DNA of 64,000 bases from Squalus acanthias (lineage: Eukaryota). A program made the translations under genes and the position numbers. The notes below the pieces were generated by a model. It was not told where the DNA came from. It saw only the letters and a program-made list of their open reading frames with translations, and searched no databases. The DNA lies in contig CM059430.1 in the NCBI GenBank assembly GCA_030390025.1, positions 72,540,001 to 72,604,000 of the forward strand, in the 5' to 3' direction. Positions within the stretch are counted from its first letter, which is position 1. Each line of letters starts with the position of its first letter. This document shows, one piece after another, positions 8,237 through 61,200 of this stretch.

Positions 8237-8249
8237 TTTGAACATGTAT

Positions 8250-14033: not shown

Positions 14034-14339
14034 CTGAAAAGTGAATAACGTGATATACACGTGCGCCAGTGTGAAGAGAGACGTGTGATATCTGACAGGT
14101 ATAATTCGTTCTGCTCTGCAAAGAACCTGTTTCATGGAGATAACTGGAAACTTCATACAGTCCCGCTGTGTTCTGTGTTTTATTTAGTTCCATACCGCTC
14201 TGAATTTCGGATCCATTTTTAAACCAAGTGATGTTCAGCTTTTCCGGGAAAAACGCAGCCGTTTTACACTCAAGAGTCAAAGAAGTCGATGACACAGTTC
14301 TAAGCACAGAGGCGAAGATCTGTAAAGGCGTCGGAGGAA
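14034..14339 (-). CDS. Gene A Ig C1-set exon (C1a), intact
   Basis: 306 bp, phase 1-1, ccacag| and |gtaagt splice sites; C1 hallmarks LECKTAAFFPEKLNITWFKNG, LYEVSSYL, YTCQISHVSL. Confidence 0.9.
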
Positions 14340-14905: not shown

Positions 14906-16370
14906 AACAACAGAAAACGCTGGAAAAACTCAGCAGGCCAGGCAGCATCCGTGGAGAGAGAAAGAGAGTTGACGTTTCAGGTCGATGACCTTTCATCAGA
15001 ACTGGGAAGAGCTGGAAATCAAATAGATTTAAGGCCAGGGTAAAGCTGGGAAAAGGGGGAGGGGATAAAGGAACAAAGGAGGAGATGAAGAGACATTAAG
15101 AGACATTAAGAGATATGCAAGGCTAGAGGTGGTGTTAATGTGACAGATTAAGGCTGAATGAAGTGTGAAATCCACTGGCAGAATGAAGGACAGCTGCCAG
15201 CTTCTAGGAGGAAAAAAAAGGTGGGGGGGACAAATAAAAGGGTGGATAAAATAAAATATAAATGTGATTGGAGCTGAGGTTATGATCTAAAATTGTTGAA
15301 CTCGATATTGAGTCCAGAGGGCTGTAGCGTGCCTAAACGAAAGATGAGGTGCTGTTCCTCGAGCTTACGCTGAGCTTCCGTGGAACAGTGTAATAGGCCG
15401 AGGACGGTGAGGTCAGAGTGGGAGTGAAGCGGTGAATTAAAGTGACAGGCCACCGGGAGCTCGGGGTCCCCCTTACGGACTGAACGGAGGTGTTCCGCAA
15501 AGCGGTCACCCAATCTGCGTTTGGTCTCCCCAATGTAGAGGAGTCCACATCGTGAGCAGCGAATACAGTATACTAAATTGCAGGAAGTACAAGTAAATCG
15601 CTGTTTCACCTGGAAGGGGTGTTTGGGGCCCTGGACAGTGGGAAGAGGGGAGGTATAAGGGCATGTGTTGCATCTCCTGCGCGTGCACGGGAAGGTGCCG
15701 GGCGAAGGGGAAGGGGTGCTGGGGGTGGTAGAGGAGTGGACTAGGGTGTCGCGGAGGGAGCGGTCCCTGCGGAATGCTGAAAGGGGAGGTGAGGGGAAGA
15801 TGTGTTTGGTGGTGGGATCACGCTGGAGGTGGCGGAAATGGCGGAGGATGATCCGTTGAATGTGGAGGCTGGTGGGGTGAAAGGTGAGGACAAGGGGAAC
15901 CCTATCGTGGTTCCGGGAGGGAGGGGCAGGGGTGAGGGCAGATGTGCGGGAGATAGAACGGACACGGTCGAGGGCCGTGTCGACCACGGTAGAGGGGAAT
16001 CCTCGGTTGAGGAAAAAGGAAGACATGTCGGAAGCACTGGTATGGAAGGTGGCATCATCAGAGCAGATGCGGCGGAGACGGAGAAACTGGGAGAATGGAA
16101 TAGAGTCCTTACAGGAGGCGGGGTGGGAGGAAGTGTAGTCCAGGTAGCTGTGGGAGTCGGTGGGCTTGTAGTGAATGTTAGTCAATAACCTATCCCCAGA
16201 GATGGAGATGGAGAAGTCGAGGAAGGGAAGGGAAGAGTCGGAGATGGACCATGTGAAGGTGAGGGAAGGGTGGAAATTGGAAGCATAGTGAATGAAATGT
16301 TCTAGTTCAGGGCGAGAGCAGGAGACGGCACCGATACAGTCATCAATGTACCGGAAAAAGAGGTGAGGGA
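14906..16370 (-). mobile_element. Penelope-like element (family 2), 5'-truncated, apparently young
   Basis: RYIDD near 16345; 301-aa ORF 15280-16185 with RT thumb and GIY-YIG (NLVYCIRC..LYIGET..RFAEH); 11-bp TSD GGAACTAAAAT (14895-14905, 16371-16381). Confidence 0.92.
14967..15003 (-). ncRNA. Minimal hammerhead ribozyme with a canonical GUC cleavage triplet
   Basis: AGTT CTGATGA aAGGTC atc GACCT GAAA C GTC AACT. Confidence 0.78.
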
Positions 16371-17373: not shown

Positions 17374-17534
17374 NNNNNNNNNNNNNNNNNNNNNNNNNNN
17401 NNNNNNNNNNNNNNNNNNNNNNNNNNNNNNNNNNNNNNNNNNNNNNNNNNNNNNNNNNNNNNNNNNNNNNNNNNNNNNNNNNNNNNNNNNNNNNNNNNNN
17501 NNNNNNNNNNNNNNNNNNNNNNNNNNNNNNNNNN
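17374..17534. other. Assembly gap
   Basis: Run of N. Confidence 1.
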
Positions 17535-17583: not shown

Positions 17584-17903
17584 GAAATACAATTAGTTCT
17601 ATGCCGTTTCCATCAACAAATTCGGATGTCCCAACTTGCACTCTGCTTTTATAGACTCCAGAGTCCTGGAATGTCACATTCTGCAGATGAAATAAACTGT
17701 TTCATTCTGTAGAGCTTCAAATTGTCTACGGTTGTCAGGCGTTACTCTTATCAATTTTTTGTCTACGACCTTGCCCCAGAAAACATTTATTTCCTCGTCC
17801 TTCTTTAATCCAGATACCGTGGCAAGTAGGGTAACGTTTTCACCCCTTTTCATCGCTACAGATTCGGGGAACTGAGTGCATTTCAGGGAAACATCTTCGG
17901 CAG
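17584..17903 (-). pseudogene. Gene A VJ-type Ig exon, frameshifted and lacking both canonical cysteines
   Basis: AEDVSLKCTQFPESVAMKRGENVTLLATVSGLKKDEEINVFWGK..PDNRRQFEALQNE/SLFHLQNVTFQDSGVYKSRVQVGTSEFVDGNGIELIVF. The exon is 320 bp versus 321 bp in gene B, with one base missing near 17700. Confidence 0.85.
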
Positions 17904-26169: not shown

Positions 26170-27133
26170 TTTGGACTAGGGTGTACAGGGCACACTTTCA
26201 AAATTTGCAGATGACACAAAACTTGAAAGTGCAGTGAACAGTGAGGAGGATAGTGATAGACTTCAAGAGGACATAGACAGGCTGGTGAAATGGGCGGTCA
26301 CGGGACAGATTAAATTTAACGCAGAAAAGTGCGAATTGATACATTTTGGTAGGAAGAACGAGGATTGCCAATATAAACTAAAGGGTACAATTCTAAATGG
26401 GGTGCATGAACAGAGAGACCTGGGGGTATATGTGCACAAATCCTTGAGTGTGGCAGGGCAGGTTGAGATAGCGGTTAATAAAGCATACGGGATCCTGTGC
26501 TTCATAAATAGAGGCATAGAGTACAAAAGCAAGGAAGTTATGATGAGCATTTATAAAACACTGGTACGACCGCAACTCGAGCCTTGTGTCCAATTCTGGG
26601 TACCGCATTTTAAGAATGGTGTGAAGGCCTTAGAGAGGGTGCAGAAAAGATTAACAAGAATGGTTCCAGGGATGAGGGACTTCAGTTACGTGGATCGACT
26701 GGAGAAATTGGGGTTGTTCTCCTTAGAGCAGAGAAGGTTGAGAGGAGATTTGATAGAGGTATTCGGAAAAATAAGGGGTTTAGACAGAGTAGATAGAGAG
26801 AAACTGTTCCAATTGGCGAAAGGGTCGAGAACCAAAGGATACCGATTTAGGGTGATTGGCAGAAGAACCAAAGGTGACATGAGGAAAAAAATTGCTTTAC
26901 GCAGCGAGTGGTTAGGAACTGAAATGCACTGCCTGGAAGGCTGGTGGAGGCAGATTCAATCGTGGCTTTCAAAAGGGAATTGGATAAGTACCTGAAGGAG
27001 AAAAAATGCAGGGCTGCGGGGAAAGGGCGGGGGAGTGGGACTAGCTGAAGTGCTCTTGCTGAGAGCCGGCACGGGCTTGACGGGTCGTAAGGCCTCCTTC
27101 CGTGCTGTAACCATTCTCTGATTCTATGATTCT
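26170..27133 (+). mobile_element. CR1-clade LINE 3' fragment
   Basis: FADD start, ORF 26234-26995 (RT C-terminal region), tail ending ATTCTATGATTCT. Confidence 0.9.
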
Positions 27134-28445: not shown

Positions 28446-28763
28446 CGGGGCAGGGCAATTGGCCGTGGAGTCCCTGGGGTAGGAAAGGGCAGCAATCCAT
28501 TTGATGACTATTTCCGGTGGGTTCTGAAACGGGGAGAACTTCACTCTAACCTACTGTCACATTGAAGTGTGTGATTATTATCAAATCGAATTAGTGCCCA
28601 GGACCGTGTGTTAGACAATTACAAATGGGCGCATGGCTACTTGTACTCAGGAAACTTAAAATATATTGGTTCCTCGTTATATCTAATGCAGAATGAACTT
28701 CTTCAAATCGACTTGCTACTTTACATTCCCATTCAGCACCGTCGTTACACTGATTCATTGACG

Positions 28764-28833
28764 TTAATTCGCTGCTTTCCTGGAGTCGGTGAGATCGGGA
28801 TCAGCTTCTGCCAGTCTGTCATCAAGTGTGTGA
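28764..28833 (-). other. Candidate last exon of gene B (now untranslated; ancestral cytoplasmic frame HTLDDRLAEADPDLTDSRKAAN*)
   Basis: Strong acceptor ctttctttttaacag|; phase matches the TM-exon donor; the paralog at 49616-49685 has the same frame length and stop. Confidence 0.5.
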
Positions 28834-29889
28834 CTGTTAAAAAGAAAGGAGTTTTCAGAATGACCCGGAAGCGGTCGGTGCTTAAAAAAATGAGCACCAA
28901 ATCCCAGATCAGAATCACCAGTCACTTTTAATTAATCTGCCAGCGAATCTCATAATGCTGCTTTCTGCATCAAGCCAGGGATATAAGAGAGATCAGGATT
29001 ATTGATGTTTGTTTTCCACCCTCATGTAATGCGACAATCTCCCAAAATTGACCAGGTTAAATGGGTCTGAATTTTACACAACAGGGTCAGACACAGGAAC
29101 CAGCTGCTATTAGGCTGGAAGTGGAGATAACGGAGCAAGTGTCCAGGAACACAGGAACAGACCTGTAGCTCAGCGCGGCGCGGCTGGGATCGAACAATTA
29201 CAGCGGAAGGTCCCAGGTTGCATTGCTGTTCTGTTGAGTTAGCTGATCCCAACCGGGTTAGTAGCAATTGGCTGTGGAGTCCCAGGGATAGTTAAGGACA
29301 GCGATCAGCCAACGTTCCTGCCAATGATTCTATCCACTGATATGCGCATGTGTCTGGACATGGATGAGCCCTACGTCCAATCACACGCAGACGCAGACAC
29401 AGACACACACGAATCGTCATGTGTCGCGCATTATTTATTCTGTTCATTGAATAAATTGAATTCTCCAGTAATGTCACAATTAGCTTATGGGCAGGTCAAA
29501 CAGAGTAAGGTGCCCGTCTGCCTCCTGCTATCTGTGCTCTGGGAAACTGCCAAGTTGTTTCATTATATGGAGAATATTAAACGACTAATACTTTCATCTC
29601 TGGAGATGCATTGCATCGGGACATTATTCAGAATCAGTCTACTAATTCCTCAGTAAGTGAGAAATGGATGTAGGTGAGTAACTGAGCGTGAAGTAAGTGT
29701 GAAATATTGAGCTGGGGGTGATTTAAACTATCGCTGGGAGATAAACAGGTGATAACGATTCGGCAGAAGTCAATACAAATGAAAATAGATCAATGTGTAA
29801 TCCAAAATATTGATTCGCTATCATCCGATTTTCACCCGCGGATAAAAAATAAAATTTTTCTCGACTGAGATAGGCGCTGTTGTTTAACG

Positions 29890-30530
29890 GTCAGTGAGGG
29901 ATGGGTGTGAGAGTCACGGTGAATGAGAGATGGGTGTGTGATTAACAGTGAGAGAGAGATGGGTATGTGATTAACAGTGAGAGAGAGATAGGTGTGTGAG
30001 TAAGAGTGAGAGAGAGATGGGTGTGTGATTAACAGTGAGTGAGAGATGGGTGTGTGATTAACGGTGAGTGAGAGATGGGTGTGCGAGTAACAGTGAATGA
30101 GAGAGGATTGTGTGAGTAACAGTGAGTGAGAGATGGGTGTGTGAATAAGAGAGAGTGAGAGATGGAATTGTGAGTACGAGGGAGTGAGAGACGGGAGTGT
30201 GAGTAACAGTGAGTGAGAGATGGGTGTGTGAGTAACAGTGAGTGAGAGATGGGTGTGTGAGTAACAGTGAGTGAGAGATGGGTGTGTGAGTAACAGGGAG
30301 TCAGAGATGGGTGTGTGAATAAGAGAGAGTGAGCGATGGGTGTGTGAGTAAGAGAGAGTGAGAGATGGGTGTGTAAAGTAACAGTGAGTGAGAGATGGCT
30401 GCTTGAGTACCAGTTGTGTGAGTAACGGGGAGTGAGCAATGTGTGTAGGAGCAATAGTGAGTGAGAGGTAGGTGTGTAAAGTAAACGTGCGTGAGAGATG
30501 CGAATGTTCGGTAACCACGGATGTGAGATG
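29890..30530. repeat. Degenerate ~28-30-bp minisatellite (GTGAGTGAGAGATGGGTGTGTGAGTAACA)
   Basis: Tandem units related to the array at 1-842. Confidence 0.9.
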
Positions 30531-30762
30531 GATGTGTCTATAACACTGAACGACACTTTCACACTGTGTAATATGATTTTCTTGCTGTGTATAATCATAT
30601 GGATAAGAAAGTGGAGAATTAATGAGTTTCAGCCAATGTCCAGGGAAACAATCCACCCAGATGTCAAAAGTCACAAAAGAAGAATTCTATCCTTTTGTTT
30701 CCTGCGAGTTATTGCTATAATTCTGTTGCGATTATCTGATCCAAGTAATGAACATCTTACCT

Positions 30763-30875
30763 TTAAATTGAGACTGTTTTCAAATGATCCACGATGAGGG
30801 TGGTCCCCACCAGAATCACCATTATCCCCAATAGTAAACGGCAGAGGTTAATGGTTTGGAATCCCTCTGTAGAAC
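30763..30875 (-). CDS. Gene B TM exon: (G)[36 protein letters not shown]
   Basis: Acceptor gcccagcag|; hydrophobic helix with Arg; stop lies 2 nt before the gtaaga donor. Confidence 0.85.
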
Positions 30876-33800
30876 CTGCTGGGCAGCAACGGAAGGGACA
30901 TTTAAGGGAGTGTAGTGAGAAACATCAGAAAAACAGAGAAGGAAAGAAACGGGACAGAGAGAGAGAGAGAGAGAGAGAGGGAGCGAGAAATAGATAGATA
31001 GAGAGAGAAACATAGAAACATAGAACATAGAAAAATAGAAGATAGGAGCAGGAGTAGGCCATACGTCCCCTCGAGCCTGTTCCACCATTTAATGAGATCA
31101 TGGCTGATCATCCAAATTCAGTACCCTGTCCCTGCTTTCTCCCCATATCCCTTGATCCCTTTAGCCTTAAGAAATATATCTAACTCCTTCTTGAATATAT
31201 TTAATGAATTGGCCTCAACTGCCTTCTGTGGTAGAGAATTCCAGAGGTTCACCACTCTCTGGGTGAAGAAATTCCTCCTTATCTCAGTCCTAAATGGCTT
31301 ACCCCTTATCCTTAGACTGTGACCTCTGGTTCTGGACTCCCCCGCCATCGGAAACATCCTTCCTGCATTTAGTCTGTCTAGTCCTTTTAGAATGTTTTAA
31401 GTTTCAATGAGATCCCCTCTCATTCTTCTAAACTCTAGCGAATATAAGCCTAAACAACCCAATCTCTCCTCATACGTCATTCCTGCCATCCCAGATATCA
31501 GTCTGGTGAATCTTCGCTGCACTCCTTCCATGGCAAGAACATCCTTCCTCAGATAAGGCGACCAAAACTGCACACAATACTCAAGGTGTGGTCTCACCAA
31601 GGCCCTGTACAACTGCAGCAAGACATCCTTGCTCCTGTACTCGAATCCTCTCGCTATGAAGGCCAACATACCATTTGCCTTCTTAACCGCCTGCTGCACC
31701 TGCATACTTACCTTCAGCGACTGGTGCACAAGGACACCCAGCTCTCGTTGCACTTCCCCTCTTCCCAATCTCTTGCCGTTCAGATAATAATCTGCCTTCC
31801 TGTTTTTGCCATCCAAGTGGATAACTTCGCATTTATCCACATTATATTGCATCTGCCGTGCATCTGCCCAATCACCCAACCTGTCCAAATTATACTGGAG
31901 TTTCTCTGCATCCTCCTCACAGCACACACGCCCAACCAGCTTTGTGTCGTCGGAAACTTGGAGATAATACATCTAGTTCCCTGGTCTAAATCATTAATAT
32001 ATATTGTGAATAGCTGGGGTCCTAGCACCGATCCCTGCGGTACCCCACTAGTCACTGCCTGTCACTCGGAAAAGGACCCGTTTATTCCAACTCTTTCCTT
32101 CCTGTCTGCCAACCAGTTCTCTATCCAAGTCAGTACCTTACCCCCAATCCCATGTGCTTTAACTTTGCACGCCAATCGCTTATGCGGGACGAAATAGATA
32201 GATAGAGACAGACAACCCGAGAGTGAGCGAGAGAAGACACATAAATAGAGAGAACGTTATAGAGACAGACAGACAGAAAGAGAGATAGAGGACAGATATA
32301 AAGACGTACATAGACAGAGAGAGAGGGACATAGACATAGCCGAAGAGCGAGAGAGAGAGACTGAGACAGAAAGAGAAACACACTCACACACACATAGAGA
32401 GAGAGAGCGAGATAAAGGGGAAGATCGAGAGCGAGACAACTGATGACAGAGAGTGTGTTGGATCCAAGGGCTGTGTGTTTTATGGTTCATTTCAGTTTAT
32501 TTACATGAACTTCAGTGAGCTTAGATCACAGGCAGATACGAAATATTAAAATTGAGATACATATAAACAATTTCAATGTCTGCAGCACGCTGACCTCTCG
32601 GGTCTTTCCACAGGCCCCTCATCCTCTCTGCAGATTCCACTGTCTGAAAGCGGGGTCAACAACTCCTCTCAGCTACATCACTCCACTGAAATCACTTCCT
32701 GTCTGCCTGCTGTCGATTCAGTCGGATTTGTTCCAATTGATGAAGTCTCTATGATTCGACTGAGTCCTTAATATTAGGACTGATTATCTCCACACCTGCT
32801 CCCTAGCACTGAACACTTGGACTTAGTGCTATAGTTACAATCTGGGTAGACTGTACACAGTGTAGGGTATTTTTTTATTTCGGACAGGAAGGGTGATCTT
32901 TGCTCCGAACGGAAAATTTGATTTATAGCATTTTTTTTGCATTTTGGAGTAGATTTTATTCATATTTTACATATTTTGCTTTCTTCATTACTTCATATTG
33001 TACCCCAGCGGGCTGGGCAGAATAGAAGTCGGATGCCAATCATATACCTTCTGAATACCTGTGAGCCAAATAACGTTCTTATTGATTGAAAATCATTTCA
33101 ACTTCTATCTTATTCTATCACTCGACACTTTTTGTTTCAACGTTACTGTTGGCGATTATATAACTAGGGGCAAATCCTTTATCTCAAGACGTTCCTTTGT
33201 TCCCTGTTTTAATGCAGCTGTTGAGCGGTTTATTATTAACAGGTTAACAGACCCACTAACTAGCAGCCAAACCCCGCAGAAAATCCTCCCAGGTTAGTGT
33301 TTTGGTGAAGTAGGGTTCTAGGCAGGAGATGATTCTACAAAGGGCAGATATTATTCAGTTCCCATCTGCAAGTCATAAATTCTTGTGTTTATTTTAATAT
33401 GACATAAATATTTGTTGATTCTTAGGGGCAGAATTAAAGTTGTTCACGCCATATCTCCAGGGGTTTTGCGGATCTTCCACCGAAATTAAGGCTAAATATG
33501 GGGAGAACCTCGTGAAAATTCCACCCATTATATGGGCCCAGAAATTGTGGTTGTACTTTGTAAAACTAACAGAAACTTTTGGCGCCCGCACATGTGCAGT
33601 TAAACGCGGAAATCCGGAACTTGTTGTCAGTGATACCCTGCCCCGCCACAGGGTGCGATGTGACAGTCTTCACAGATGCAAACAGCACATAATCATTGAT
33701 TTGACGTAAACTTGAACTTTTGACGCAATCTTCTCGTTGAAAAACTGATGAAAAATGTAAGCCTTGTTGAATGAAGTGTAATTGAGGTTTTAACGGCATA

Positions 33801-36800
33801 CTAAGTCATAATTAATGCTAAACAACCTCTCTGACCCTGTAAAGTTAATTAATAATTCTGTACTCTCATTCCCTCCATGCCATGATAAACATTTCATAGA
33901 TTTTCAAATATATTTTTAAGTTTGTTTACGATATTTCAGCTTCTGTTATGTGTATGTTCCAATATTTATTTTGCTCCCTGTAAAATGATTAAAAAGTAAT
34001 GATAATCAGTGCTTTTTACGTCCTGGTTTTGCTGTCTGTTTGAATGCGTCAATTTGATTGGCTGCTCAGCCTTCTTGAAGACTTCACTGTTCCTGGAAGC
34101 CACAGATGTTTTATAGATGTCACCATAATGAAATTGGCGATGTAATTGGTGACATCAACGTCACAGATCCCACTAAATCTTTTTGGCCTGCTTTCTTCGA
34201 GGTCAGCGGCGAGTGCCGTCCGGTCACTACGGACCACAACATCCGGGCATCTATTATTAGTCATAATCCCTTGGTGTTGTAGATAAGGGTGCAAAACTAA
34301 ATGTAGTCTTCGGATGAAATTCCAATAGAGGACGGGGTGGTAACTGAACTTAAGAGGGGGAAGACGGCAACCAAGGAGTCTGGAGAAACCCACAAAAGGA
34401 CGGCAGAGTGGCGAGGGGAAGGTAGAACTGGGATTGACTTCCGGGAAGAAGGATGGAGAGAACATAAGAACATAAGAAATAAGAGCAGGAGTAGGCCATA
34501 CGGCCACTCGAGCCTGCTCCGCCATTCAATAAGATCATGGCTGATCATCGACCTCAACTCCACTTTTCCGCCTGATCCCCATATCCCTTGATTCCCCTAG
34601 AGTCCAAAAATCAATTTATCTCAGCCTTGAATATACTCAATGGGTGGAAGATGTTGGATGGAGGAGAGAGGGTGAAGAGATGCAAAGGACGAGGAAAAGG
34701 AGTGTGGGGAGAGGAAGGAGTGGAGAACCAACTCGAGGGATAAACCTACTTGACCTTGTCTTCGCCAATCTACCTGTCACAGATGCATCTGCCCATGGCA
34801 GTATTGGTAGGAGTGATCATTGTAATGTCCTTGTGGAGACAATGTCCTGTCTGCACACTGAGGACACACGTGTTGTGTGTCACTACCAGCGTGCTAAACG
34901 GGATAGATTCAGACCAGATCTATCATCTCAAAACTGGGCATCCATGAGGCGTTGTGGGGCATCAGCAGTAGCAGAATTGTATTCCACCAGAATCTGTAAC
35001 CTCATGGCCCGACATATCCCTCACTCTATGATTACCATCAAGCCAGGGGATCAACCCTGGTTCAATGAGGAGTGTATAAGATCATGCCAGGACTAACACC
35101 AGGCATATCTTAAAATGAGGTGCCAAACTGGTGAAGCTGCAACACAGGACTATATGCATGCTAAACAGCGGAAACAGCATGCTATAGACTGAGCTAAGCG
35201 GTCCCACAAACAACGGTTCAAATCAAAGCTCTGTACTGCAGTTACAACCCGTCATGAATGGTGGAGGTCAATTAGACAGTTCATGGGAGTAGGAGGCTCC
35301 ATGAACATCCCCATCCTCAATGATGGCTGAGCCCAGCACGTGAGTGCAAAAAAAAATGAATCTTTTGCAAACATCTTTATCCAGAAGTGCCTAGTGGATG
35401 ATTCATCTCGGCCTACACCTGAGGTCACAACAATCACAGAAGCCAGTCTTCAGCCAATTCGATTCACTACATGTGACTTCCAGAAACCGCTGAGCGCACT
35501 GAATACAGAAAAGGCTATGGGAACAACATAATGTTTTAAAATTCGGTTATGGGATGTAGGCGTCACTGGCAACGCCAGTATTTATTGCCCATCCCTAATT
35601 GCCCTTGAAAAGGAGTTGCTGAGCCGCCTTCTTGAACCTTTGCAGTCCGTTTGGTGAAGGTACTCCCACAGTGCTGTTAGGGAGAGATTTCCAGGATTTT
35701 GAAACAGCGACGATGAAGGATCGGCGATATACTTCTAAGTCAGGATAGTGTGTGACTTGGAGCGGAGTTGGAGATGGTCGTGTTCCCATGCGCCTGCTAC
35801 CCTTCTCGTTCTAGGTGGAAGAGGTCGCGGGTTTGGGAGGTGCTGCCGAAGAAGCCTTGGGGAGTTGCTGCATTGCATCTTGCAGATGGTACATACTACA
35901 GCAAAGGTATGCCGGTGGTGGAGGGAGTGAATGTTTAAGGTGGAGGATGGGGTGCCAATCAAGCGGGCTGCTTTGTCCTGAATGGTGTCGAGCTTCTTGA
36001 GTGTTGTTGGAGCTGCACTCATCCAGGCCAGTGGAGAGTATTCCATCACACTCCTTACTTGTGCCTTGTAGATTTTGGAAAAGCTTTGGGGAGTCAGGAG
36101 GTGACACACTCGCCGCAAAATACCCAGCCTCTGACCTGCTCTTGTTTCCACAGTATTTATGTGGCTGGTCCAGTTAAGTTTCTGGTCAATGGTAACCCCC
36201 AGGATGTTGATGTTGCGGGATTCGGCGATGGTAACGCCGTTTAATGTCAAGGGGAAGTGGTTAGTCTCTCACTTGTTGGAGATAGTCATTGCCTGGCACT
36301 TGTGTGGCTTGAATGATAACTGCCACTTCTCAGCCCAAACCTGAACGTCGTGCAGGTCTTGTCGCATGCGGGCATGGACTGCTTCATTAACTTAGGAGTT
36401 GTGAATGGGACTGAACACTGTGCAATCATCACCGAACATCCCCATTTCTGACGTTATGTTGGAGGGAAGATCATTGATGAAGCAGCTGAAGATGTTTGGG
36501 CCTAGGAGACTGCCTTGAGGAACTCCTGGGCCTGTGATGATTGACCTTCAACAACCACAACCATTTTACTTTGTGCTAGGTATGACTCCAGCTAGTGGAG
36601 CGTTTAACCCCTGATTCCCATTGACTTCAGTTTTACTGGGGCTCCTTGATGCCACACTCGGTCAAGTGCTGCCTTGATGTCAAGGGCAGTCACTTTCACC
36701 TCACCTCTGGAATTCATCTCCTTTGTCCATGTTTGGACCAAGGCTGTAATGAGGTCGGGCCGAGTGGTCTTGGCGGAACCCAAACTGGGCATCAGTGAGC

Positions 36801-39800
36801 AGGTTATTGGTGAGTAAGTGCTGCAAGATAGCACTGTCGATGACACCTTCCATCACTTTGCTGATGATTGAGAGTAGACTAATGTGGCAGTAATGGGGCG
36901 GGAAGGCGCCGAACACCTCAAATCTCTTCGCTGGGAGCCAGCGGAAGCCAAACACAAGCAGCGCAAGGAGCGCACCTGAACTCAAGCACCCCACACACCC
37001 GGCCCTTCAACCACCATCTGCCCCACCTGTGAAGAGACTGTAGGTCCCGCATTGGACTCATAAGTCACGTGAGAACTCATTTTTAACGTGGAAGCAAGTC
37101 ATCCTCGGTTCCGAGGGACTGCCTAAGAAGAAGAATTGGCCGGATTGGATTTGTCCTGCTTTTTGTGGACAGTACTTACCTGGGCAGTTTTCGACATTGT
37201 CGGTTAGATGCCAGTGCTTTAGATGTACCGGAACATCTTGTATCCATAGTGTTTATGTGGCTGGTCTAGTTAAGATTCTGGTCAATGGTGACCCCCAGAA
37301 TGTTGATAGTGAGGGATTCGGCGATGGTAATGCCGTTAAATATCAAGAGGAGGTGGTTAGGCTCTGTCTTGTTGGAGATGGTCATTGCCTAGCACTTGTG
37401 TGGCGTGAAAGCAAGTTGCCACCTATCAGCCCAATCCTGATTGTCATCCAGGTCTTGTTGCATGCAGGTACGGACTGCTACATTACAGAACGAAACTAAA
37501 CACTGTGCATACATCAGCAAACATCCACACTTCCGATCTTATGATGGAGGGAAGGTCACTGATGAAACCTTCCCACCACCCACAAGGCACAAGTCAGCAG
37601 TGTGATGAAGTTAATTTTGACTTCGCATTATTGTGTTAAATGGGCAATATGGATTTTGCCGCCCATTATACATCTGTCCGGATTTTCATTTACAAAGTCA
37701 AAATCAAAAGCTGTTTGAGATTGCAATGAGCACAGTCACCCCATACACACTCACTGCATTGAGAATGTTCTTGTGCGGATTAGCGGTGACAGACGGTCCC
37801 TGACAGGATCATATCCATAACAAAGATGCAGTTCAGGTCAATACTGAGAATCTGGGCCTCTTTCCCCGACCACGGAAATGTAGTAAACAATTAGAAGGAT
37901 AGTAACAGACTTCAAGAGGATATAGATTGGTAAAATGGGCAGAAACGTGGCGGATGAAATTTAAGGCAGAGAAAAGTGAAATGATACATTTTGCTAGGAA
38001 GAATGAGGACAGGCAATATGAACTAAATGGTAGAATCTTAAAGTGGAGCCAGAACAGAAAAGCCTGGGGATATATATACACAAACATGTGTGGCAGGGAA
38101 AGTTGAGAAGGCTATTAAAAAAGCATATGGGACCCTTGGCTTTATTAATAGAGGAATAGTATACAAGGAAGTTATGCCAAACCTTTATAGAACACTGGTT
38201 ATGTCTCAGCTGGAAATTGTATTCAATTCTGGACACCACACTTTATGAAGAATGTTAAGGCCTTAGAGAGGATGCAGAAGAGATTTACTAGAATGGTACC
38301 AGGCTTCAGTTACGTGGAGAGACTGGAGAAGCTGGGGTTGTTATCCTTCCAGTAGCGATGGTTAAGAGGAGATTTGATGGAGGTGTTCAAAATCCTGAAC
38401 GGTTTTGATAGAGTAAATAAGGAGAAACTGTTTGCAGCGGCAGAAGGATCGGTAACCCGAGGACACAGATTTAAGGTGAATGGCAAAAGTACCAGAGGCG
38501 ACATGAAGAAAACATTTTTTACGCAGTGAGTTGTTGTGATCTGAATCGATAATAACATTCAAAAGAGAATTGCATAAATACTTGAAGGAAAATCATTTAC
38601 AGGGCTATGGGGAAAGTGCAGGTGAGTGGGACTAATTGGATCGCTCTAGTAAAGACTTACTGGTCCAATGGACCGAATAGCCTACTTCTGTGCTGTATGA
38701 TTCCTTGATATCCACCTCCTCCAGGAACTCGTCTGGCTTTTTTTAAACATTTGCAGCGAAAGCGCGCTCACTGCACAAGCCTTCGGCTTATTCCAAAGGT
38801 CAGTGGCATTCTGGGAAAGACAAATCAACTGACATCTAAACTAGTTCTGTGCTTACATGACATGTATTCATGTCCCCTCCTTCTCCCTAATTCACCGAAT
38901 TCAAATAATCTATCCACGTGTACACAGTCTAGCCCTTTCACCGCTCAATTAAATATCCCGAAGTCAACGCTTTTCTAATGTAGAAATACCCAGATCTTTG
39001 AACCTATCGTGCTAACTGAGGGTTTTTAAACAAGGCACCAGTCTAGTGGCTCTCCTCTGTTCCGTTTCCCAGTGCCTCTATACCTCTCACCATATGAGTG
39101 ATCAGAATTGGACACAGTGTTATAGATGAGGGTTGACAAAGTCAAGGATATTAGAGCACTATCTGTTTATAGTGGTTTGTTTTTGCTATACACCCCAATT
39201 CTGTATTGGTTTGGCTTTTACCTCTGGGCACTGGTCATGGACCTTTAGAGATTCATACACTATAACACCCCGGTCTCTTTCCTGCTCATCATAGTTTACT
39301 TCAGAACCCAGCCCACTATACACATGCTTGGCAATAGCCCTACCCACCTGTATTGCACTACGTATATCTACGTTAAATGTAATCTGCCACATGCAAGCAC
39401 ACTCCCCCATCGCATCTAGGTCAGAGTGTAATCTATTTTTTTTGCTGCACAACGGTTCTGACATCAGCGCAGATATTTGTACCAGCAGTGAACTTGCTGC
39501 GCCTTCATCCAGATCATTGATACAAATCGTGAAGTGTAACGGCCTTTACTTCGATCACGAATGGATCCAACTAGTAGGCGGCATCCACATTACCATTAAT
39601 GACAGCACTCTATCTATGACAATGTAACCAATTCACTACTGAAACCAAGATCTGCCCTCTAAACACACAGCGCTCTATCTTACATAGTGACATAATACCG
39701 GCCCATCGTCAAAAGCTTTTTTGGACACTGCAATGAGCACTCAGACTCACTCCATTGATAATGTTCTGGTGCAAGATTAGTGGAGACAGAAAGTCCGTGA

Positions 39801-42800
39801 CAGGCCCCTATATATAACACTGATACAGTTCAGGTCAGTAATGAGAATCTAAGGCTCTTACCCGGATCACAAACCGTGTAGCTGTCGTAGGCTGGAGCCC
39901 GGAGAGAGACATGAGACACCTGACATATATAAACGGACCAGTTCTCCACAGTGTTGAGGGAGCTGGAAACTTGATACAATCCCACCTCGTTCCGTCTTCC
40001 CGTCGTGTTTATCCCAGATGTAATTTCGGTGACATTTTTATACCAAGTGAGGTTAAATTCCTCCGGGAAAAAGTCAGCCGTTTGACAGAGGAGTGTGAGG
40101 GATGGAAAGGGCAGGCGGGTAATCTTCACAGGTGTTGGCGGCACTGGAAAGCAGTAAAAGGAAATGAGCTGACATCGTTATTCTTACATTACATTGGAGA
40201 TGGGAAGGGGCAGAAGGCCAGAAGGCTGCAGTGCAGTGTCTCTTTAAGAGGAATTTTTATCGCCATATTAATATTAATAATGAACGCTTTGTTTGCTTAC
40301 AACAGCAAATTGCAATATTTCTTTCGTTCTTGTCTTTATCCAGGACCCGATGACGGGAATGCCCTATATCTGTGGACTGAAACGAATTAAAGTCCTAATT
40401 AAACACACCCGCTCCAAGGGGCGTCTGAAAGCTCCCGCTACTCCTTTCTGCATGTGTATCGCTGTGACTGAGCTCCGGTGTTTAAATAGGTTTCAGGGTC
40501 ACTAGCAGAGAGACAACGTATTGTCATAGAATGCCATAACAGTACGATGAATGATAGGGCTAGATCTTGACTTTGTGCAATAGTGTAAATAGGCGATAGC
40601 AAATCGGTCGCCGGTTTTACATCTCTCCCGATTTTCCAACGAATAAAAATCGGGAGAGAAGTAAAACGGGCTATCACTAGTTTTACATTATCGCACACAG
40701 TCAAAATCTACCCAATGTCTCTGTTCGATTCTGGGAGTTGTTGCCAGGGTCTAATAAGAGTGAAGCTGCCCTGTACCATAGCTCACCCACTCGGTTCATT
40801 CACTCAAGTCCGGACCCCTATAATCGATCTGCGTAAATTATTTCAACTCTTCGCGCGTGTTCAGGTACAAAGTGAAACCGATGGAGCGGGAAAATTCATA
40901 ACAAAATAACCAGCTAACACATATGAGGGATAAGGTGCCGATTTTGCAGTTACAGAGATCCGTTTCGATCACATTTTAGGGAACAAAGAAATCCAGGAGA
41001 CAGTGCTCCCGGCATGGAGCCTTGAGGGACGAGATTGCGGGCTGAAATCTGACCCTGTGAAATGGCCCATGTTTGACCCGCACTTTGATCGGGCTAAGCT
41101 GGGTACCCCGATGCCCTGCCTCGCTCAATTTCTCCACGAACAGCTCATTTGTCCTCCTTTTTTCCGAGTGAAAGCATAGAAATGTAAGCACAGTAGGAGC
41201 CAACGTGCCCGGCCCATCACAGTCTCGCTCCCAACTCTCTGCCCAATATAATCCATTGCCCTTTCCCACGCATTTTCTTCATTTGTTTTTCTAATTCCCT
41301 CTAAACCGTCAGCTCGATTCCCTTTACTAGCCTCTTGTGCCGCTATATTCCATCTATATATCACCCGTTGAGTGCAATGTTTTCTCTGCCCTCACCTTTC
41401 TGTTTCTGGAGCTGATACTAAGTTTATTACCCCTTGTTACTCCTAATGTGGTCAGTGGAAATAACCTCTCAAACCTCTGAAACCTCTTCTCAAACCTCTT
41501 CTAATGAGACTCCCTCGAACTTTCTCAGCTCGACAGAATATACGCCGGGTTTTTTAAATCGCCCATCATAACCATCTTCTCTCATCCCTGGGATCATCAC
41601 AGTTAATTCGTCTTGCACTTTCTTGTTAACCTCAATGTCCTTTCTCTTATGGAACACTCAATATAACACGCATTCCTCTGAGTATAAACTGGTAAACTGG
41701 CTTGTCAAAGGACCAGTTGGAATTCAATCCTACTCTGAACCCCATTGTGCAACTTACATCGCCTGTGGACCATATAGTAAGATTTAAATATTGAAGCATA
41801 TATAATTCCCCTATAATCTTGACACAGAGAAACTATCAGACAGCGGTTAACATCTGACACCCCATTCTCCCCAGGAGAGAAGGTTCTCGTTAAAAACACT
41901 CCCCCATTATCCCTCCGATTGTTGGATTTAACGCCTAAATTTCCAGCGAGAGACAGAGGGTCGGATTTACGCTGTAACCGACAAAAAGTTTGAGAATGGG
42001 ACTGGGTTTATAAAACGGGCCCAGACGATACTATTGGTGACACAGACTGAGTTGGAACAGAAGATGACCGACGCACCGGCCTAGTGGCACGCAGTTTAGT
42101 AGTGTTTCATGGAAATGTTCCTCATCCAATGCTTGAAAAACCCTATTCCCAACTATGACGATCCTCATAACAATCTCACCTCTTACCCTCTGGTATCGAT
42201 TATGCAATTATCCATTTTAAAGGTCGAGCTTTTTCCTAACCAGGTCTGTGATATTTGGAACGGATCCACAGTTTGGATAAAGTGCTTCCAGTGCACATCC
42301 CTGCACTAATCAGAAGTCCAGCAGAGTTCTACAATATTCCCTCACTGTCCCTTCTTGCTCAGAGACTGATCCCACTGACTAACCTGGGTAAAGTGCACAG
42401 AAAGCGTATTCACTTCTTCAGCAGGATAAGAGGCGAGATCAAATCTATAATCAGTGTAAGTAAATCTCACCGTGTAAGTCAAATCGATAATCTGAGTCAA
42501 TATATCGCTGCGTGTAATCAAATCTATGTCAGTGTAAATAAAATCTATTACCTCAATAAAGAAATCTCACAGTGTAAATGAAATCCAACATTATTGAAAT
42601 AAAATCTAGGATTTTTTGCAGTAACATGTTGTTCAGAGTTTATCCCGTCACTCCTCTTTGTCCCGTTGATTAATTATTCGCTAGCTCTTGGTTTTGCTCT
42701 GCTCCCACCGTCCTTTATTTCTGTCTGTTGGCAATGCTTGCATCTATTTCCTAATAGTTGCTGATAATCTCACTGTAATATCCCCAGGTTTGAATCGCCA

Positions 42801-43782
42801 GGCCTTCGGGAAAAGTCCTTAGATTCCGGAGTGCCGGTTTGAATCGGGTCGGGAGGAGGACCTCAGTGATTAGAGGGTTGAAGGATTTTAATCCAGGCTG
42901 GATTCTATTCAGACCCAAATACAGCTTTCATTTTTCGATAATTGTTTAAAAGTAAACAAAAAACTTATTCAACACTTTCTATTTGTAAATATGTGATGTA
43001 AAGCAGATTTAAATAAATGATACAGACTAAGAGAACAGTGATTGACTGCAATCAGACAATCTGAGTTTCATTGTCCCGTGTTGGCTCATCGGTGCTGCTC
43101 GGTGAGAACAGACAGGATTCACTGCAACTAGGGAGAAAGCAACTACACCGAACCGAACAGAGGGAAAATACCTTGCTGCTCTTTTATTCAATATTCTCTC
43201 ATCTGCACCTGTATAATTTTACCGTGCACCACTATCCCCTCAGTGACACTCACCATGTACTGTAAGCTCAGTCCCATTCCCGTTGGAAATCTTTCTGCTC
43301 CCGTCTCTCACGCTGCAATAATAGACTCCGGAGTCCTGGAAACTCACATTCAGCAGATGGAACTCGGCAGATCCTTGCTTGAAAGGTATCATTTTTTTCC
43401 TTTTGTCTGCAGTCGGATCCAAAGTCCGATCCTGGCCAGCTCTCCGCCAATAAACATCCACCAATGCGTTGGGATCGAAAAGCGGGGCAGAGCAATACAT
43501 GGCCACATTTGCGCCTTTAACCGGAGTCAGCAGGGCGGGGAACTGAAGCACGGAGAGAGAGGCTCCGTCAGTTACTGTCAGAAATAAACACAAACACGGG
43601 TTATAGGCAGTGATAATGATCGGGAGGATGAAAAGGGAGGACATTATATGGGAGAAACATTACGAAAGAAAACGTTGAGTTTTTATTCACACTTTCCGAT
43701 TTATGAGACAGATATAAATATATAAACCTGTGTAAATAATGCCCAGCGCTGAGAGGTACGGCAGCACATCAAGTACAGGCAT
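30763..43782 (-). CDS. Gene B: spliced Ig-superfamily receptor, leader-VJ-C1-TM(Arg), ~256 aa; SIRP/NKp30/B7-H6-like domain types
   Basis: join(43728-43782, 43254-43574, 39862-40143, 30763-30875); all junctions are phase 1, GT-AG and in frame with no stops. The leader donor (GTTTAT) is weak. Confidence 0.82.
31005..32190 (-). mobile_element. CR1-clade LINE 3' fragment inserted in a microsatellite
   Basis: [10 protein letters not shown] and RT C-terminal ORF; 18-bp TSD GAAATAGATAGATAGAGA (30987-31004, 32191-32208); absent from gene A. Confidence 0.92.
33533..34248. mobile_element. GGGC-ended MITE
   Basis: Imperfect TIRs GGCCCAGAAATTGTGGT / ACCACAACATCCGGGC; absent from the paralogous site (~7245). 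Confidence 0.6.
34460..34642 (-). mobile_element. CR1 3' tail / SINE-like fragment
   Basis: Begins AACATAAGAACATAAG; reverse complement of the CR1 tail; absent from the gene A paralogous site. Confidence 0.75.
34722..37575. mobile_element. Cluster of CR1/L2-group LINE fragments (+ 34722-35520; - 35545-36890 and 37136-37575)
   Basis: [13 protein letters not shown] (endonuclease end), [37 protein letters not shown]. Confidence 0.8.
36900..37135 (+). mobile_element. RTE-clade LINE 3' end nested in the LINE cluster
   Basis: CPTC..CRSRIGL.SH.RTH-like C-terminus followed by an (AAG)n tail. Confidence 0.6.
37870..38703 (+). mobile_element. CR1 LINE 3' fragment splitting a relic C1 exon
   Basis: Homologous to 26230-27130. 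Confidence 0.85.
38705..38810 (-). pseudogene. Relic 5' half of an extra C1 exon in gene B
   Basis: Acceptor context gatgtcag..ctttcccag as at 40143; degenerate LSLQ-C..FLEEVDI versus LTLLC..FPEEFNL; a duplicate of the post-C1 intron with a mutated donor at 37725-37868. Confidence 0.45.
38985..39730 (-). mobile_element. Old CR1-like LINE fragment
   Basis: [29 protein letters not shown] resembles an RT C-terminal region. Confidence 0.6.
39862..40143 (-). CDS. Gene B Ig C1-set exon
   Basis: 282 bp, phase 1-1; [40 protein letters not shown]. Confidence 0.9.
43254..43574 (-). CDS. Gene B VJ-type Ig V-set exon
   Basis: 321 bp; B-strand Cys (AMYC), Trp (DVYW), DSGVYYC and a J-like GNGTELTV in a single exon. 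Confidence 0.92.
43728..43782 (-). CDS. Gene B leader exon ([18 protein letters not shown])
   Basis: 55 bp, phase 1, hydrophobic; 153-bp intron to the V exon. Confidence 0.7.
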
Positions 43783-44629
43783 TCTGAGCAAAAGCGATGA
43801 ATTCGATCACTCGTTTGTTGTAATTCAGCGGGAAACGCTGAAGGGTGCGGGGAGGGAGAGATCTGAGGACCATCTGGGTGTCGCAATAAGGCGCGCCACA
43901 GGATATCTGAGGCGGCAGCTTCAATGCTCTGGTTTCCCTTTATGGTAGATCTGTGAACACAGGTATGACAACACGTTGAAAGTTACCGTGATCCAGATCT
44001 CATTGGTGGCCAAGAGAAACCGGAACATATTTGCAACACGTGAATGATTCCGAATTGCAACAACTCTTGACTTAGCCGAACGCTGTCCAACCTGTTGCCG
44101 ATACCTAAGTGCAGGTGCCGTGAATGTGGTCTGTATCTGACTCTTTCGCCACGCCCCCATGTATCGCCCGGAGAAGTGTTGAGCCACAAAGTGCAGAAGA
44201 TCGTACGTCCCAACCCTGCTCGTTTTTTGAGTTGGCTGAACTGAGTTTTGACCGTTTGCTACAACTGCCCAGAGACCCGGCGATATGGAGGGGAAAATCG
44301 GGCAGAAAATTTCCTTGTTGATTAGACTGGCCCCTTTGCACCGAGGCAGGCGCACAGCGACTGACGAGAATGACTCTTTCAACAGAAATTAGCTGTAGAA
44401 ATTGATGGGCTCTCGTGACACCAGCCGATTGCACAGAGATTATTAACTGGAGTCTAAACACTAATTATAACATATGGTTCTCAAGGTTTAGTCGCCATTT
44501 ACTAACAGTTTCGAAGGTGCGACTACTTGGTCGAAACTAATGCAGTTGGTGACTGGTTTCAGAGCCTTTCGGGAGATGAGATAGTTAGCCCGAATATTTG
44601 AATTGGAACAAGTCAGACCGACTGCAGAA

Positions 44630-58225: not shown

Positions 58226-61200
58226 TGTCGTAAGAATGAGCCTTACGCGTGGTGAACTTAAAGTAAGCTTTAATCAACTAAAACGGTGCTACATACAAAA
58301 GAGGTCTTACTGTATGCCTCTCCTGGATCCAACTGATCAGCCCAGTATTTATCCTGGACTAATCACAGGAAGTGATGTAATAAAGTTCGAGTCACAGGAA
58401 GCTGTATTGTGTTACCACATTCTCCCCCCCAAAAAGATTTGGAGGCCGGGATGAAGTTCGAGTCACAGGAAGCTGTATTGTGTTACCACATTCTCCCTCC
58501 ATTTCGTAGCCGCTGGACGAGGGAGAGCCGCACCCGTTTGGGTTCTCGTAGCGGTAGGGGCCCCTAGCCCGTTTACCCGCCACGGGCCGTGGACCAGAGT
58601 CCGAGTGATCCAGCCCGCTCTGTGAGGGGTCAGGACGATCCTGACTGTGTACTGGTGCCCGAACGGGTGTCGGGCAGGGCTGTGGCAGATCCGTTTCCGA
58701 GCGTAAGATACGGGGTGGATCGTGGCTGCGCGTGCGAGCCCCGACGGGCTCATAGTCAGTCTGCCCCAGGTCGGCACGCTGGAGTGAGGTACCAGCCAGC
58801 GTCAGATCCAGATCGTGATGAGAGGCACCTGGCGAGCCCAGAGATGTGCCTGGTACAATATCATCCCCTGGTGTCCCTCTATGTTTCGGCGGGCAGGGAG
58901 CCAGATCCCGCAATTACACGGTAGATTCCCGACCGTCAGGATACCGAATATAGGCGTAGGTAGGGTTGACGTCAGTGAGCTCAACCTCATCTACCAGGGG
59001 GTCATTCTTAGATGCCCGAACATATCTTCGGAGTAGCACTGGTCCCGGTGCAGTCAGCCACGATGGGAGAGATATCCCATAGGATGAGCGACGCTGAAAT
59101 CGGAAGAACCGTTCATGAGGCGTCGTATTTGTGGCGGTCAAAAGGAGGGACCGTGTGGAGTGTAATGCATCTGGAAGTACTGCTTCCCATTGCTGGTTGT
59201 GTAGGCCCCGAGATCTCAAAGCCAGACGTACCGCATTCCAGATGATAGCGTTAAAACGCTCGACTTGCCCATTCCCGACCGGATGATAAGGCGTCGTTCT
59301 GCTGGCAGCAATACCCCATTCCGAGAGATAGGCCTTGAGTTCTGCTGACATAAAAGAAGGGCCCCGATCCGAATGAACATAGGATGCCATGCCACAGAAA
59401 GCAAATACCTGCTCAAGGCAGCTGATAACCGTGGTCGTCAGCATATTGGGGCAGGGAAAGGCAAATGGAAAACGGGAATACTCATCGACCATGGTCAATA
59501 GATAAGTGTTGCGAGTTGAAGAGGGCAATGGCCCCTTAAAATCGATGCTAAGCCGTTGCATTGGCTGGGTCGCATGTATGAGTATACCACCCGAGGGGCG
59601 GAAAAACTGAGGTTTCAATTCCGCACAGACTCTGCAGTCTGAACACATCTTCGTTACATCCCCGGTAGAGAATGGGAGATTTCGGGACCGCACGAAGTGT
59701 AGCATGCGAGTAACGCCCGGATGACACAACCCATCATGGATGTCTACGAGCGTAGAGGGTGCCATGGCGGAGCAGAATGCTCGTGTGAGGGTATCCGGAG
59801 CCACATTCTCCTTGCCAGGTCGATAGTGGATGGTGTAACCAAAAGAGACCAATTCCAGCCGCCAAAGCTGGATTTTATTATTTTTAATTTTGGTCCGTTT
59901 TCGATTATCGAGCATGAAGGCGACCGATCGCTGGTCCGTGATTAAGGTAAAGTGCTGGCGAGCTAGGAGATGAGTCCACTTCCGTACTGCCTCTATGATG
60001 GCTGTAGCTTCTTTCTCGACTGGAGGATAATGTAGCTCAGCCCCTTGAAAAGTCCTGGACAAAAATGCCACCGGACGCCCTTCCTGATTCAGAGTGGCCG
60101 AGATTGCCACCTCCGAGGCATCACACTCAACAACAAAAGGAAGACTCTCATCGATGGAGTGAAGAGCCGCTTTCTCCAACTGTTTTTTCAGGAGGTTAAA
60201 GGCTGCAACAGCCGCTGTGTCTAGTGGGAATGTGCTGGCCTTCAGTAGAGGTTGGATTCGGTCCGAGAAGTTAGGAATCCATTTAGCATAGTATGCAAAC
60301 AGGCCGAGGGCCCGGCGCAAGGAGGCCGGATTCTTAGGTGGCGGGAGTTCTTGGAGTGGGCGAAGCCTTTCAGGGTCAGGTTTAATGATGCCATTGCCCA
60401 CACAATAGCCAAGGATGTTGATGGTTGGTTGTGACTCAATGGATTTAGCCGCATTTAATGTCAAATTACGGTGCTGGAGTGCATCCCAAAATCGTTGGAG
60501 ATTGGCGTCATGTTCCCGCTGATTGCGACCTGCGACAGTAATATTGTCCAGATAAGGAAACGTATACTTTAAGTCTTCCTGTTTGAAAAGGTCATCCATT
60601 GCTCGCTGGAAGACAGCCACTCCATTAGTGACCCCAAAGGGGAGGCGACGAAATTGATACAGCCGTCCATTGGCTTCAAAGGCCGTATACTGCTTGTCTG
60701 AGACCTTCAAGGGTACCTGATGATAGGCACTTTTCAGATCATATGTTGAGAACACCGTGTACTCAGCCAGTTTATTAACCATATCATCGATGCGCGGCAA
60801 TGGGTATGCGTCCAAGTCCGTATATTGATTGATGGTCTGTGAATAGTCAATGCACAGCCGTTTCTTGTGAGGTTGTAGAGGGTTCTTAACAATAACGACC
60901 TGGGCGCGCCATGGCGACGAACAAGGCTCGATGATATCCTCTGCTAAAAGCCGAGAAATCTCAGCCGCAATAAAAGACTGGTCTTCCTGACTGAAACGTC
61001 GTGACTTTGTTATAATCGGTTTGCATCGAGGAGGGATACTGGTAAACAGTGAGGGTTCATCCAGTGAAGCTGCTGACAATGCACAGAACGGTAATCGAGG
61101 TCGTATATTAGAAATAGTGAGTACAGGTTTGGATCCGCCGAACTCAATGGTGAGCTTCTTATGCTGCTTTTGAAAATCTAGCCCTAAGATAAGATCACTA

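Follow-up and report, generated by a model that had tools for sequence, protein, structure and literature searches.

An intact VJ-C1 receptor gene of Squalus acanthias, probably an activating-type member of a paired receptor family of cartilaginous fishes

A 64,000-nucleotide stretch of the Squalus acanthias genome (assembly GCA_030390025.1, contig CM059430.1, positions 72,540,001 to 72,604,000), here called the window, contains a gene at 43782-30763 on its minus strand that we designate gene A; all coordinates given below are those of the window. Gene A is probably an intact receptor gene of the activating type, one of a large family that spans the cartilaginous fishes, in which a variable (V) domain with a germline-joined joining (J)-like strand is followed by a C1-set domain, and in which activating and inhibitory forms are paired. 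Gene A itself is one ordinary member, and the interest lies in the family.

Gene A combines a germline-joined VJ-C1 ectodomain with an Arg-containing transmembrane segment

An earlier note on this stretch, made from the sequence alone, described gene A as a four-exon receptor, and exon translation, the splice sites, and Pfam matches to the V-set and C1-set families show its coordinates, motifs, and phases all to be correct. The four exons are open, the six splice sites are canonical, and every junction is in phase 1 as calculated from exon lengths (Table 1), with introns of 153 nt in the leader, 3110 nt between the V and C1 exons, and 8983 nt between the C1 and transmembrane exons. In translation, the V exon has its first Cys in MYC, its Trp in YW, and the motif DSGVYYC, after which the J-like G strand NGNGTELTV, with a sequon and with the J-like GxG kept, lies within the V exon itself. 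This arrangement, with a split leader ahead of a single exon in which V and J-like strand are contiguous, is non-rearranging, as the earlier note had proposed for the VJ-C1 unit, and it rules out a rearranging immunoglobulin (Ig) or T-cell receptor (TCR) segment. The V exon matches Pfam V-set with an E-value of 9.1e-10 (39.2 bits, cutoff 26) and the C1 exon matches C1-set with an E-value of 5e-12 (46.4 bits, cutoff 21). The Cys/Trp cores of both Ig domains are intact, and the motif YxCxVxH is kept. In the transmembrane segment, an Arg lies near the outer end and Asp-His at the inner end, followed by the six-residue tail LKTVSI.

The leader exon resembles the leaders of homologues such as the database protein P0153 in a by-eye comparison, and its 18 residues gave no tblastn match from full-length shark models. 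A stalk Cys in the gene A motif YTVCDP (39862-39872) is not found in the homologue P0154, which has RDP there, while a Cys beside the transmembrane Arg (30840-30850) is also present in P0154. An interchain disulfide in the gene A product is possible.

Homologues of gene A occur across the cartilaginous fishes

The exons of gene A were searched one at a time, each as a separate query. Scored against 1.84 billion representative proteins, the V exon matches 227 proteins at E ≤ 0.001, 47 at E ≤ 1e-10, and 5 at E ≤ 1e-30. A further search with the V exon among short proteins, whose length window makes it uninformative, gave one candidate and no scored match. The matches among representative proteins, together with full-length shark models that are collinear with the V, C1, and transmembrane exons, place the likeness of gene A to its homologues far above chance; judged by its sequence, gene A is a real and intact gene, and it is probably functional. 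We looked up 30 of the 150 listed matches, and 28 of these 30 clusters are chondrichthyan. They include the sharks Scyliorhinus, Cetorhinus, Heterodontus, Chiloscyllium (two species), Mustelus, Carcharodon, Heptranchias, and Hemiscyllium, the rays and skates Mobula (two species), Hemitrygon, Pristis, Leucoraja, and Amblyraja, and the chimaera Callorhinchus with three clusters. The other two come from Latimeria, where the protein consists of a V domain, a transmembrane segment, and an immunoreceptor tyrosine-based inhibitory motif (ITIM) with no C1 domain, and from the viper Vipera, where it is a multi-Ig protein. A profile built from 28 family members matches 37 proteins at E ≤ 1e-8, all of them chondrichthyan, so that the multigene family suggested by the earlier note is borne out by both searches. 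The V exon is 56-70% identical to P0001-P0009 and at best 79% identical, to P0156/P0157 from Heterodontus; with this as the best identity, and with no match marked as the gene's own protein, the S. acanthias gene itself is not in the collection.

All names carried by family members are automatic or 'hypothetical'. The commonest is SIRP-alpha-like, and the others are SIRP-beta-1 isoform 3-like, tapasin-related-like, NCR3LG1-like, NCR3-like, Ig lambda-1-like, CD276 homolog, H-2 class I-like, and HLA-DO-beta-like, besides uncharacterized. The family is scattered over nine or more automatic product names, which hides it from comparative studies. We rejected an identity as tapasin/TAPBPL, major histocompatibility complex (MHC) class I or II, or CD276, which are automatic labels found on single models alone. 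Neither an N-terminal tapasin domain nor a peptide-binding domain was noticed in the homologue sequences that were read, a reading that included no domain-tool search aimed at one.

Two further variants of the architecture occur among the homologues. The isoform models P0001, P0004, and P0005 skip the C1 exon and join the V domain directly to a transmembrane segment and ITIM tail; should these isoforms be genuine, alternative splicing would add NKp30-like single-V forms to the products of the family. A branch from sharks and rays (P0088, P0135, P0173, and P0174) has the order V, C1, and transmembrane segment followed by a Lys-rich, proline-containing tail without ITIMs, and may differ in function from the paired members.

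Activating and inhibitory designs share nearly identical ectodomains

The family contains two designs. In the activating design, an Arg lies 3-5 residues into the transmembrane segment, Asp or Glu followed by His marks its inner end, and the tail has 6 to ~40 residues. Examples are P0154/P0155 from the sevengill shark Heptranchias, P0007 from C. plagiosum, P0051/P0167 from S. canicula, P0130 from C. punctatum, P0019 from Carcharodon, and P0012, and the R...[D/E]H transmembrane pattern is present in P0007, P0012, P0019, P0051, P0130, and P0154. P0154/P0155 follow the same plan as gene A (V-C1-...LNFCRFLLGLMVILLGTTIIVDHLKSVPF), with an Arg-containing transmembrane segment and a short tail. In tblastn comparisons P0154 is collinear with gene A, with identities of 70% in the V domain, 70% in the C1 domain (73% in a further comparison), and 63% in the transmembrane exon (over 38 residues, E 6e-14), and it terminates in IVDHLKSVPF where gene A has DHLKTVSI at the corresponding end. 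An AlphaFold2 model of P0154, calculated from the family alignment with a pLDDT of 90.6, contains the V domain, the C1 domain, and a helix at residues 230-255 that holds R234. The Arg-transmembrane module is conserved across shark orders.

In the inhibitory design, the same ectodomain is attached to an uncharged transmembrane segment, for example FLYSLVSGCAAGGLIILVLVILV, and to a tail of ~110 residues in which the alignment shows four conserved tyrosine motifs, xSYAxL, (E/D)RTVYAQTKQG, LTYAxLD, and xEYAxI. The ectodomains of the two designs can be almost the same within one species. In Heptranchias, P0154 with its Arg-containing transmembrane segment and P0158 with its ITIM tail are 84% identical over 231 residues, and P0007 and P0153, which represent the two designs in another single species, are 80% identical over 206 residues. 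Forms with a charged transmembrane segment and forms with ITIMs, on near-identical ectodomains in one species, were found in species other than S. acanthias. Such near-identical ectodomains on both designs are the signature of paired activating and inhibitory receptors. The conserved Arg-transmembrane module with a short tail, set opposite ITIM-tailed siblings, makes 'activating' the natural reading of gene A. The activating member recognized by the earlier note is therefore upheld, whereas the inhibitory partners, which are its main context, had been overlooked.

The two designs are interspersed in phylogenetic trees. These were quick maximum-likelihood trees of ~100 columns in which 23-24 of ~51 forks are unresolved, and they are used only for this qualitative point. 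At least six state changes are needed on the V tree (7 activating and 27 inhibitory rows) and at least four on the C1 tree, with 27 of 60 labelled proteins unclassed by the motif rule and left out of the design counts. On the V tree, P0007 and P0153 are joined with a support of 100 and P0154 and the inhibitory P0182 with 81. The V and C1 domains of gene A fall in a shark subfamily that holds both designs, and its C1 domain lies inside a 21-row group with a support of 100.

In the mechanism that we propose, the gene A product would be a type I surface glycoprotein, with a V domain whose ligand would be the same as, or akin to, that of its inhibitory siblings. By analogy with paired Ig-superfamily receptors, the buried transmembrane Arg would pair with an acidic transmembrane residue of an adaptor dimer that bears immunoreceptor tyrosine-based activation motifs. 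Ligand binding would then lead to activation of a Syk/ZAP70-type kinase, and the inhibitory siblings would recruit SH2 phosphatases through their ITIMs. The candidate adaptor would be a CD3-zeta-family chain, the only such adaptor documented in this analysis for a shark: PMC11372145 describes cd247 (CD3-zeta) as a T-cell marker expressed in bamboo-shark T cells. The pairing with FcR-gamma suggested by the earlier note is doubtful, since Akula et al, 2014 (PMC4016189) report neither an FcR-gamma chain nor homologues of the C2-only receptors of the leukocyte receptor complex (LRC) in cartilaginous fish in the data then available. Tandem duplication, decay, and a swapping of ectodomain and transmembrane/tail modules would have driven the evolution of the family.

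The ectodomain is of a generic antigen-receptor type

In comparisons with the PDB, the best match of the V exon is a TCR-alpha V domain (6e-5), with the J strand included, followed by antibody V domains. The C1 exon matches antibody constant domains, SIRP-gamma (1.9e-9), UrIg2 (2.7e-9), SIRP-alpha (4.1e-9), and MHC class II beta. With the family profile, whose whole-chain scores sum several domains, a chain bearing an Ig lambda VL-CL ranks first (2e-40; best stretch 71 bits). UrIg2 (9dmx) follows in second place (5e-36, with 56 bits for its best V-C1 stretch), and SIRP-alpha comes seventh (1.2e-30) in a collinear match across V-C1 at profile positions 24-216. The ranking given by a V-only profile was swamped by multi-Ig proteins, so that for family assignment only the absence of NKp30 from its best 60 matches is informative. 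In a Foldseek search with the model of P0154, Fab light chains and TCR-beta chains headed the list (E ~1e-15) with low TM-scores of 0.33-0.45, which are explained by differences in the elbow and the transmembrane helix; on this predicted structure, the search shows only a V-C1 fold like that of light chains and TCRs. As far as its sequence tells, the ectodomain is a generic antigen-receptor-type VJ-C1 unit, similar to much the same degree to Ig lambda, UrIg2, SIRP, and TCR and not demonstrably nearer to any one named family, and gene A fits the defining architecture of none of SIRP, UrIg/UrIg2, NKp30, light chains, or rearranging chains.

Several of these systems share much of the plan. TCR chains also run from V(J) and C1 through a stalk to a transmembrane segment with a basic residue and a very short tail, but gene A differs in its contiguous V and J, its ITIM-tailed siblings, and its non-conserved stalk Cys. 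The activating receptors of the LRC (LILRA, KIR-S, NKp46, and GPVI) likewise have an Arg at the outer transmembrane end, a short tail, and ITIM-bearing partners, and the gene A transmembrane segment may resemble the NLxR type of LILRA, NKp46, and GPVI, as the earlier note proposed; their domains, however, are C2/I-set rather than VJ-C1. UrIg and UrIg2, described in PMC12227049 as non-rearranging antigen-receptor genes retained in elasmobranchs, share with gene A the single-exon VJ, the split leader, and the C1-type domains that follow, and UrIg2 also has a transmembrane segment. According to the same source, UrIg2 has 9-11 C domains and is found in gill and liver, whereas gene A has one C1 domain and belongs to a large, paired, multigene family with either an Arg-containing transmembrane segment or an ITIM tail. 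With the V exon alone as query, UrIg2 does not appear in the best 60 PDB matches. The Discussion of PMC12227049 mentions neither SIRP nor ITIM nor the family of gene A.

Alternative identities and the case for a dying copy

SIRPs consist of VJ-like and C1-set domains and occur in paired forms, with ITIM-tailed inhibitory and short-tailed activating members, the latter with a basic transmembrane residue, on similar ectodomains. The family could thus be a cartilaginous-fish branch of SIRP proper, with gene A a SIRP-beta-like activating SIRP. The collinear profile match to SIRP-alpha, the high places that SIRP-gamma and SIRP-alpha take in the C1-exon matches once antibodies are set aside, and the commonest automatic name all favor this identity, as does the four-tyrosine inhibitory tail, which presumably recalls that of SIRP-alpha. 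We nevertheless think it unlikely, because SIRPs have two membrane-proximal C1-set domains whereas gene A and P0154 have one (no second C1 domain was found in intron 3 of gene A), because the outer-end Arg of gene A differs from the mid-transmembrane Lys of SIRP-beta, because an Ig lambda chain and UrIg2 outscore SIRP-alpha with the same profile, and because the V exon finds no SIRP in its best 60 PDB matches. NKp30 also has a germline VJ-type V domain and a transmembrane Arg, and signals through CD3-zeta/FcR-gamma; its V domain, however, sits directly on the stalk and transmembrane segment without a C domain, where gene A has a conserved C1-set exon. It is very unlikely that the family belongs to the studied shark NCR3 (NKp30) genes and is known under that name. 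One isoform, P0100 from Pristis, is automatically named 'NCR3-like', and PMC12227049 lists nurse-shark NCR3 genes (MT914154-914161), but the best 60 PDB matches include no NKp30 chain for either the V exon or the V-only profile, and none of the 37 family-profile matches carries a submitter's NKp30 or NCR3 name or comes from nurse shark. Least probable of all is a secreted, Ig-light-chain-like V-C1 product to which the distant transmembrane exon does not belong. The top-ranking lambda VL-CL stretch, the Fab light chains at the head of the Foldseek list, the name 'Ig lambda-1 light chain-like' on some members, the germline-joined shark lambda genes described in PMC12227049, and read-through of the gene A C1 donor, which would terminate 10 codons on, right after a Cys, are all consistent with such a product. 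Against it, the C exon of a light chain ends in a stop with no transmembrane segment to follow, whereas the C1 exon of gene A has a strong phase-1 donor and no stop of its own; the transmembrane exon opens in phase 1 and is 63% identical to P0154, in which C1 leads straight into the transmembrane segment; and a second copy of this exon lies 2.2 kb below a C1 fragment.

A different objection is that gene A, intact as it looks, is a silent or dying unit of a tandem array eroded by transposons and has no present function. We consider this, too, unlikely. It would fit the frameshifted, Cys-less V exon, half C1 exon, and orphan transmembrane exon found within 40 kb, the 8983-nt intron 3 with its reverse-transcriptase-like open reading frames (ORFs), the lack of a spliced contig among the run contigs examined, and the 7 non-synonymous versus 3 synonymous changes among the 10 listed exon differences of the related contig X1. 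Gene A has, on the other hand, kept four open exons, six canonical splice sites, its Cys/Trp cores, YxCxVxH, and the J-like GxG, and a 7:3 ratio is equally typical of a fast-evolving receptor V domain, in a variant whose frame has no stop. Several observations do weigh against an intact activating member of a paired family. The window neighbors of gene A are decayed copies, so that it may sit in a dying part of the cluster, and a tblastn search with 12 family proteins found no uncharged-transmembrane or ITIM exon in the 64-kb window at E < 0.01. The homologues are automatic gene predictions, some of which may lack transcripts, the trees have few columns and many unresolved forks, no spliced contig was found in the four runs compared, FcR-gamma as a candidate adaptor is reported absent from cartilaginous fish, and P0154 lacks the stalk Cys seen in gene A. 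The intact activating-type receptor remains the reading that we prefer.

The sequencing runs concern the V exon. A search with this exon found three holders in two studies, none recorded as RNA, and the kinds of run are guesses. Four runs were compared with 39700-43900, X1 and X3 coming from one study and X2 from another, and a V-exon contig was present in three of the four (one each in X1, X2, and X3) with ~95-98% identity. The X1 and X3 contigs both start at 43205 and extend 49 nt into intron 2, and X1 ends at 43577, 3 nt past the 5' end of the exon; as they continue into the intron, they represent unspliced DNA or pre-mRNA of a relative. The X2 contig (43298-43497) lies wholly within the V exon and is uninformative on splicing, and the remaining run pieces are short repeat matches at 40553-40713. 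No contig in the four runs covers the leader or C1 exon across 39700-43900, and the absence of a spliced one carries no weight on splicing either way. The X1 contig has 18 differences from gene A, of which 11 are listed; ten of these lie in the V exon (3 synonymous and 7 non-synonymous), and none creates a stop.

Novelty and implications

Paired activating and inhibitory Ig-superfamily receptors and non-rearranging VJ-C1 receptors are both already known kinds. What we did not find described is the build of this family, with a single C1 domain, an outer-leaflet Arg and inner Asp-His, and an antigen-receptor-like gene structure, in all cartilaginous-fish groups sampled. The description 'uncharacterised' in the earlier note stands to the extent that we found no paper on the family, and falls short in that the automatic models P0154/P0155 already have the exact architecture under misleading names. 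The literature search that found no description of the family covered full texts, with most papers in subscription journals beyond its reach, and a prior description, for example in studies of NCR3 or B7H6 genes of sharks, is possible.

The oldest lineage to possess Ig, TCR, and MHC is that of the cartilaginous fishes, whose innate paired receptors are almost unknown. The family would be an obvious candidate for their natural killer (NK)/myeloid receptor system, and it would add a second non-rearranging VJ-C1 gene set, besides UrIg/UrIg2, to models of Ig and TCR origin. A bolder reading, which we regard as quite a long shot, is that the pre-RAG antigen-receptor chain has a surviving relative in this family, besides UrIg/UrIg2. 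It would then have the TCR-chain plan without rearrangement, assemble with CD3-zeta-type modules, exist in hundreds of copies as a counterpart of KIR/LILR, reportedly absent from cartilaginous fishes, and be interleaved with germline-joined Ig lambda clusters. If this were true, the TCR signaling assembly would predate rearrangement and could be studied in a living non-rearranging receptor.

Surroundings of gene A in the window

The window consists mostly of transposon sequence, and the decayed relatives of gene A all lie downstream of it on the same strand (Table 1). Apart from members of this family and transposons the window contains no genes, and so none of the framework genes of the MHC class III region, where NKp30 is located. 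The V exon among them is one base short, so that its frame is shifted. The open C1 exon is 46% identical to that of gene A and 47-49% identical to P0012/P0017, and in the third C1 exon the 5' half has been replaced by unrelated sequence. Runs of N at 8667-8797 and 17374-17534 adjoin decayed remnants, the latter just downstream of the decayed V exon.

Table 1. Exons of gene A and related features of the window.
Feature	Position	Strand	Description
Gene A exon 1	43728-43782	-	55 nt; ATG at 43782; 5' part of split leader (18 residues); phase-1 donor CAG/gtttat
Gene A exon 2	43254-43574	-	321 nt; leader end and VJ-type V-set; acceptor ...ttctgacag, donor ATG/gtgagt
Gene A exon 3	39862-40143	-	282 nt; C1-set; YICQVSH, end YTVCDP with stalk Cys; acceptor ...ctttccag, donor CGG/gtaaga
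Gene A exon 4	30763-30878	-	116 nt; stalk, Arg-containing transmembrane segment, tail, stop TAA at 30765-30763; tandem cag/cag acceptor
AG/GT donor (AGgtaaga)	30759-30762	-	Consensus; 2 nt past gene A stop
Leader-like exon, seven codons	18121-18142	-	Short; precedes decayed V exon
Decayed paralogue V exon	17584-17903	-	320 nt; both canonical Cys gone; two tblastn pieces in different frames
Paralogue C1 exon	14034-14339	-	306 nt; open, phase 1-1; more distant subfamily; Pfam C1-set E 1.3e-13
Third C1 exon, 3' half only	8124-8241	-	79% identical to gene A C1 over 38 residues
Second Arg-transmembrane exon	5818-5930	-	91% identical to gene A transmembrane exon over 33 residues

The stop codon of gene A is followed by a splice donor (Table 1), and the second Arg-transmembrane exon ends alike, with a stop and then an AGgtaag donor 2 nt on (5814-5817). 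Neither the tails of seven activating models nor a frame scan of 28700-30762 revealed a credible coding exon past the gene A stop and donor. With no recognizable coding exon downstream, the donor probably serves an exon of the 3' untranslated region or is a relic, for example of lost cytoplasmic exons.

Long ORFs at 29832-30674 on the minus strand, directly downstream of the gene A transmembrane exon, and at 1-465 on the plus strand encode short tandem peptide-like repeats (HTHLSLTV... and KGTVSERL...) and look like satellite or low-complexity DNA rather than genes. Transposon-derived ORFs lie at 15283-16185 on the minus strand and at 2230-4869, 26234-26992, 31400-31972, and 35738-36250; one of them weakly matches GIY-YIG (E 2.4e-4), slightly short of the Pfam cutoff, and the others have no Pfam hit. 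Several of the transposon ORFs in the window resemble a transposon-derived N-terminus that is fused onto the database model P0012. An ORF of 1172 residues at 58917-62432 on the minus strand is the pol of a long-terminal-repeat retroelement, with protease, reverse transcriptase, RNase H, and integrase domains.

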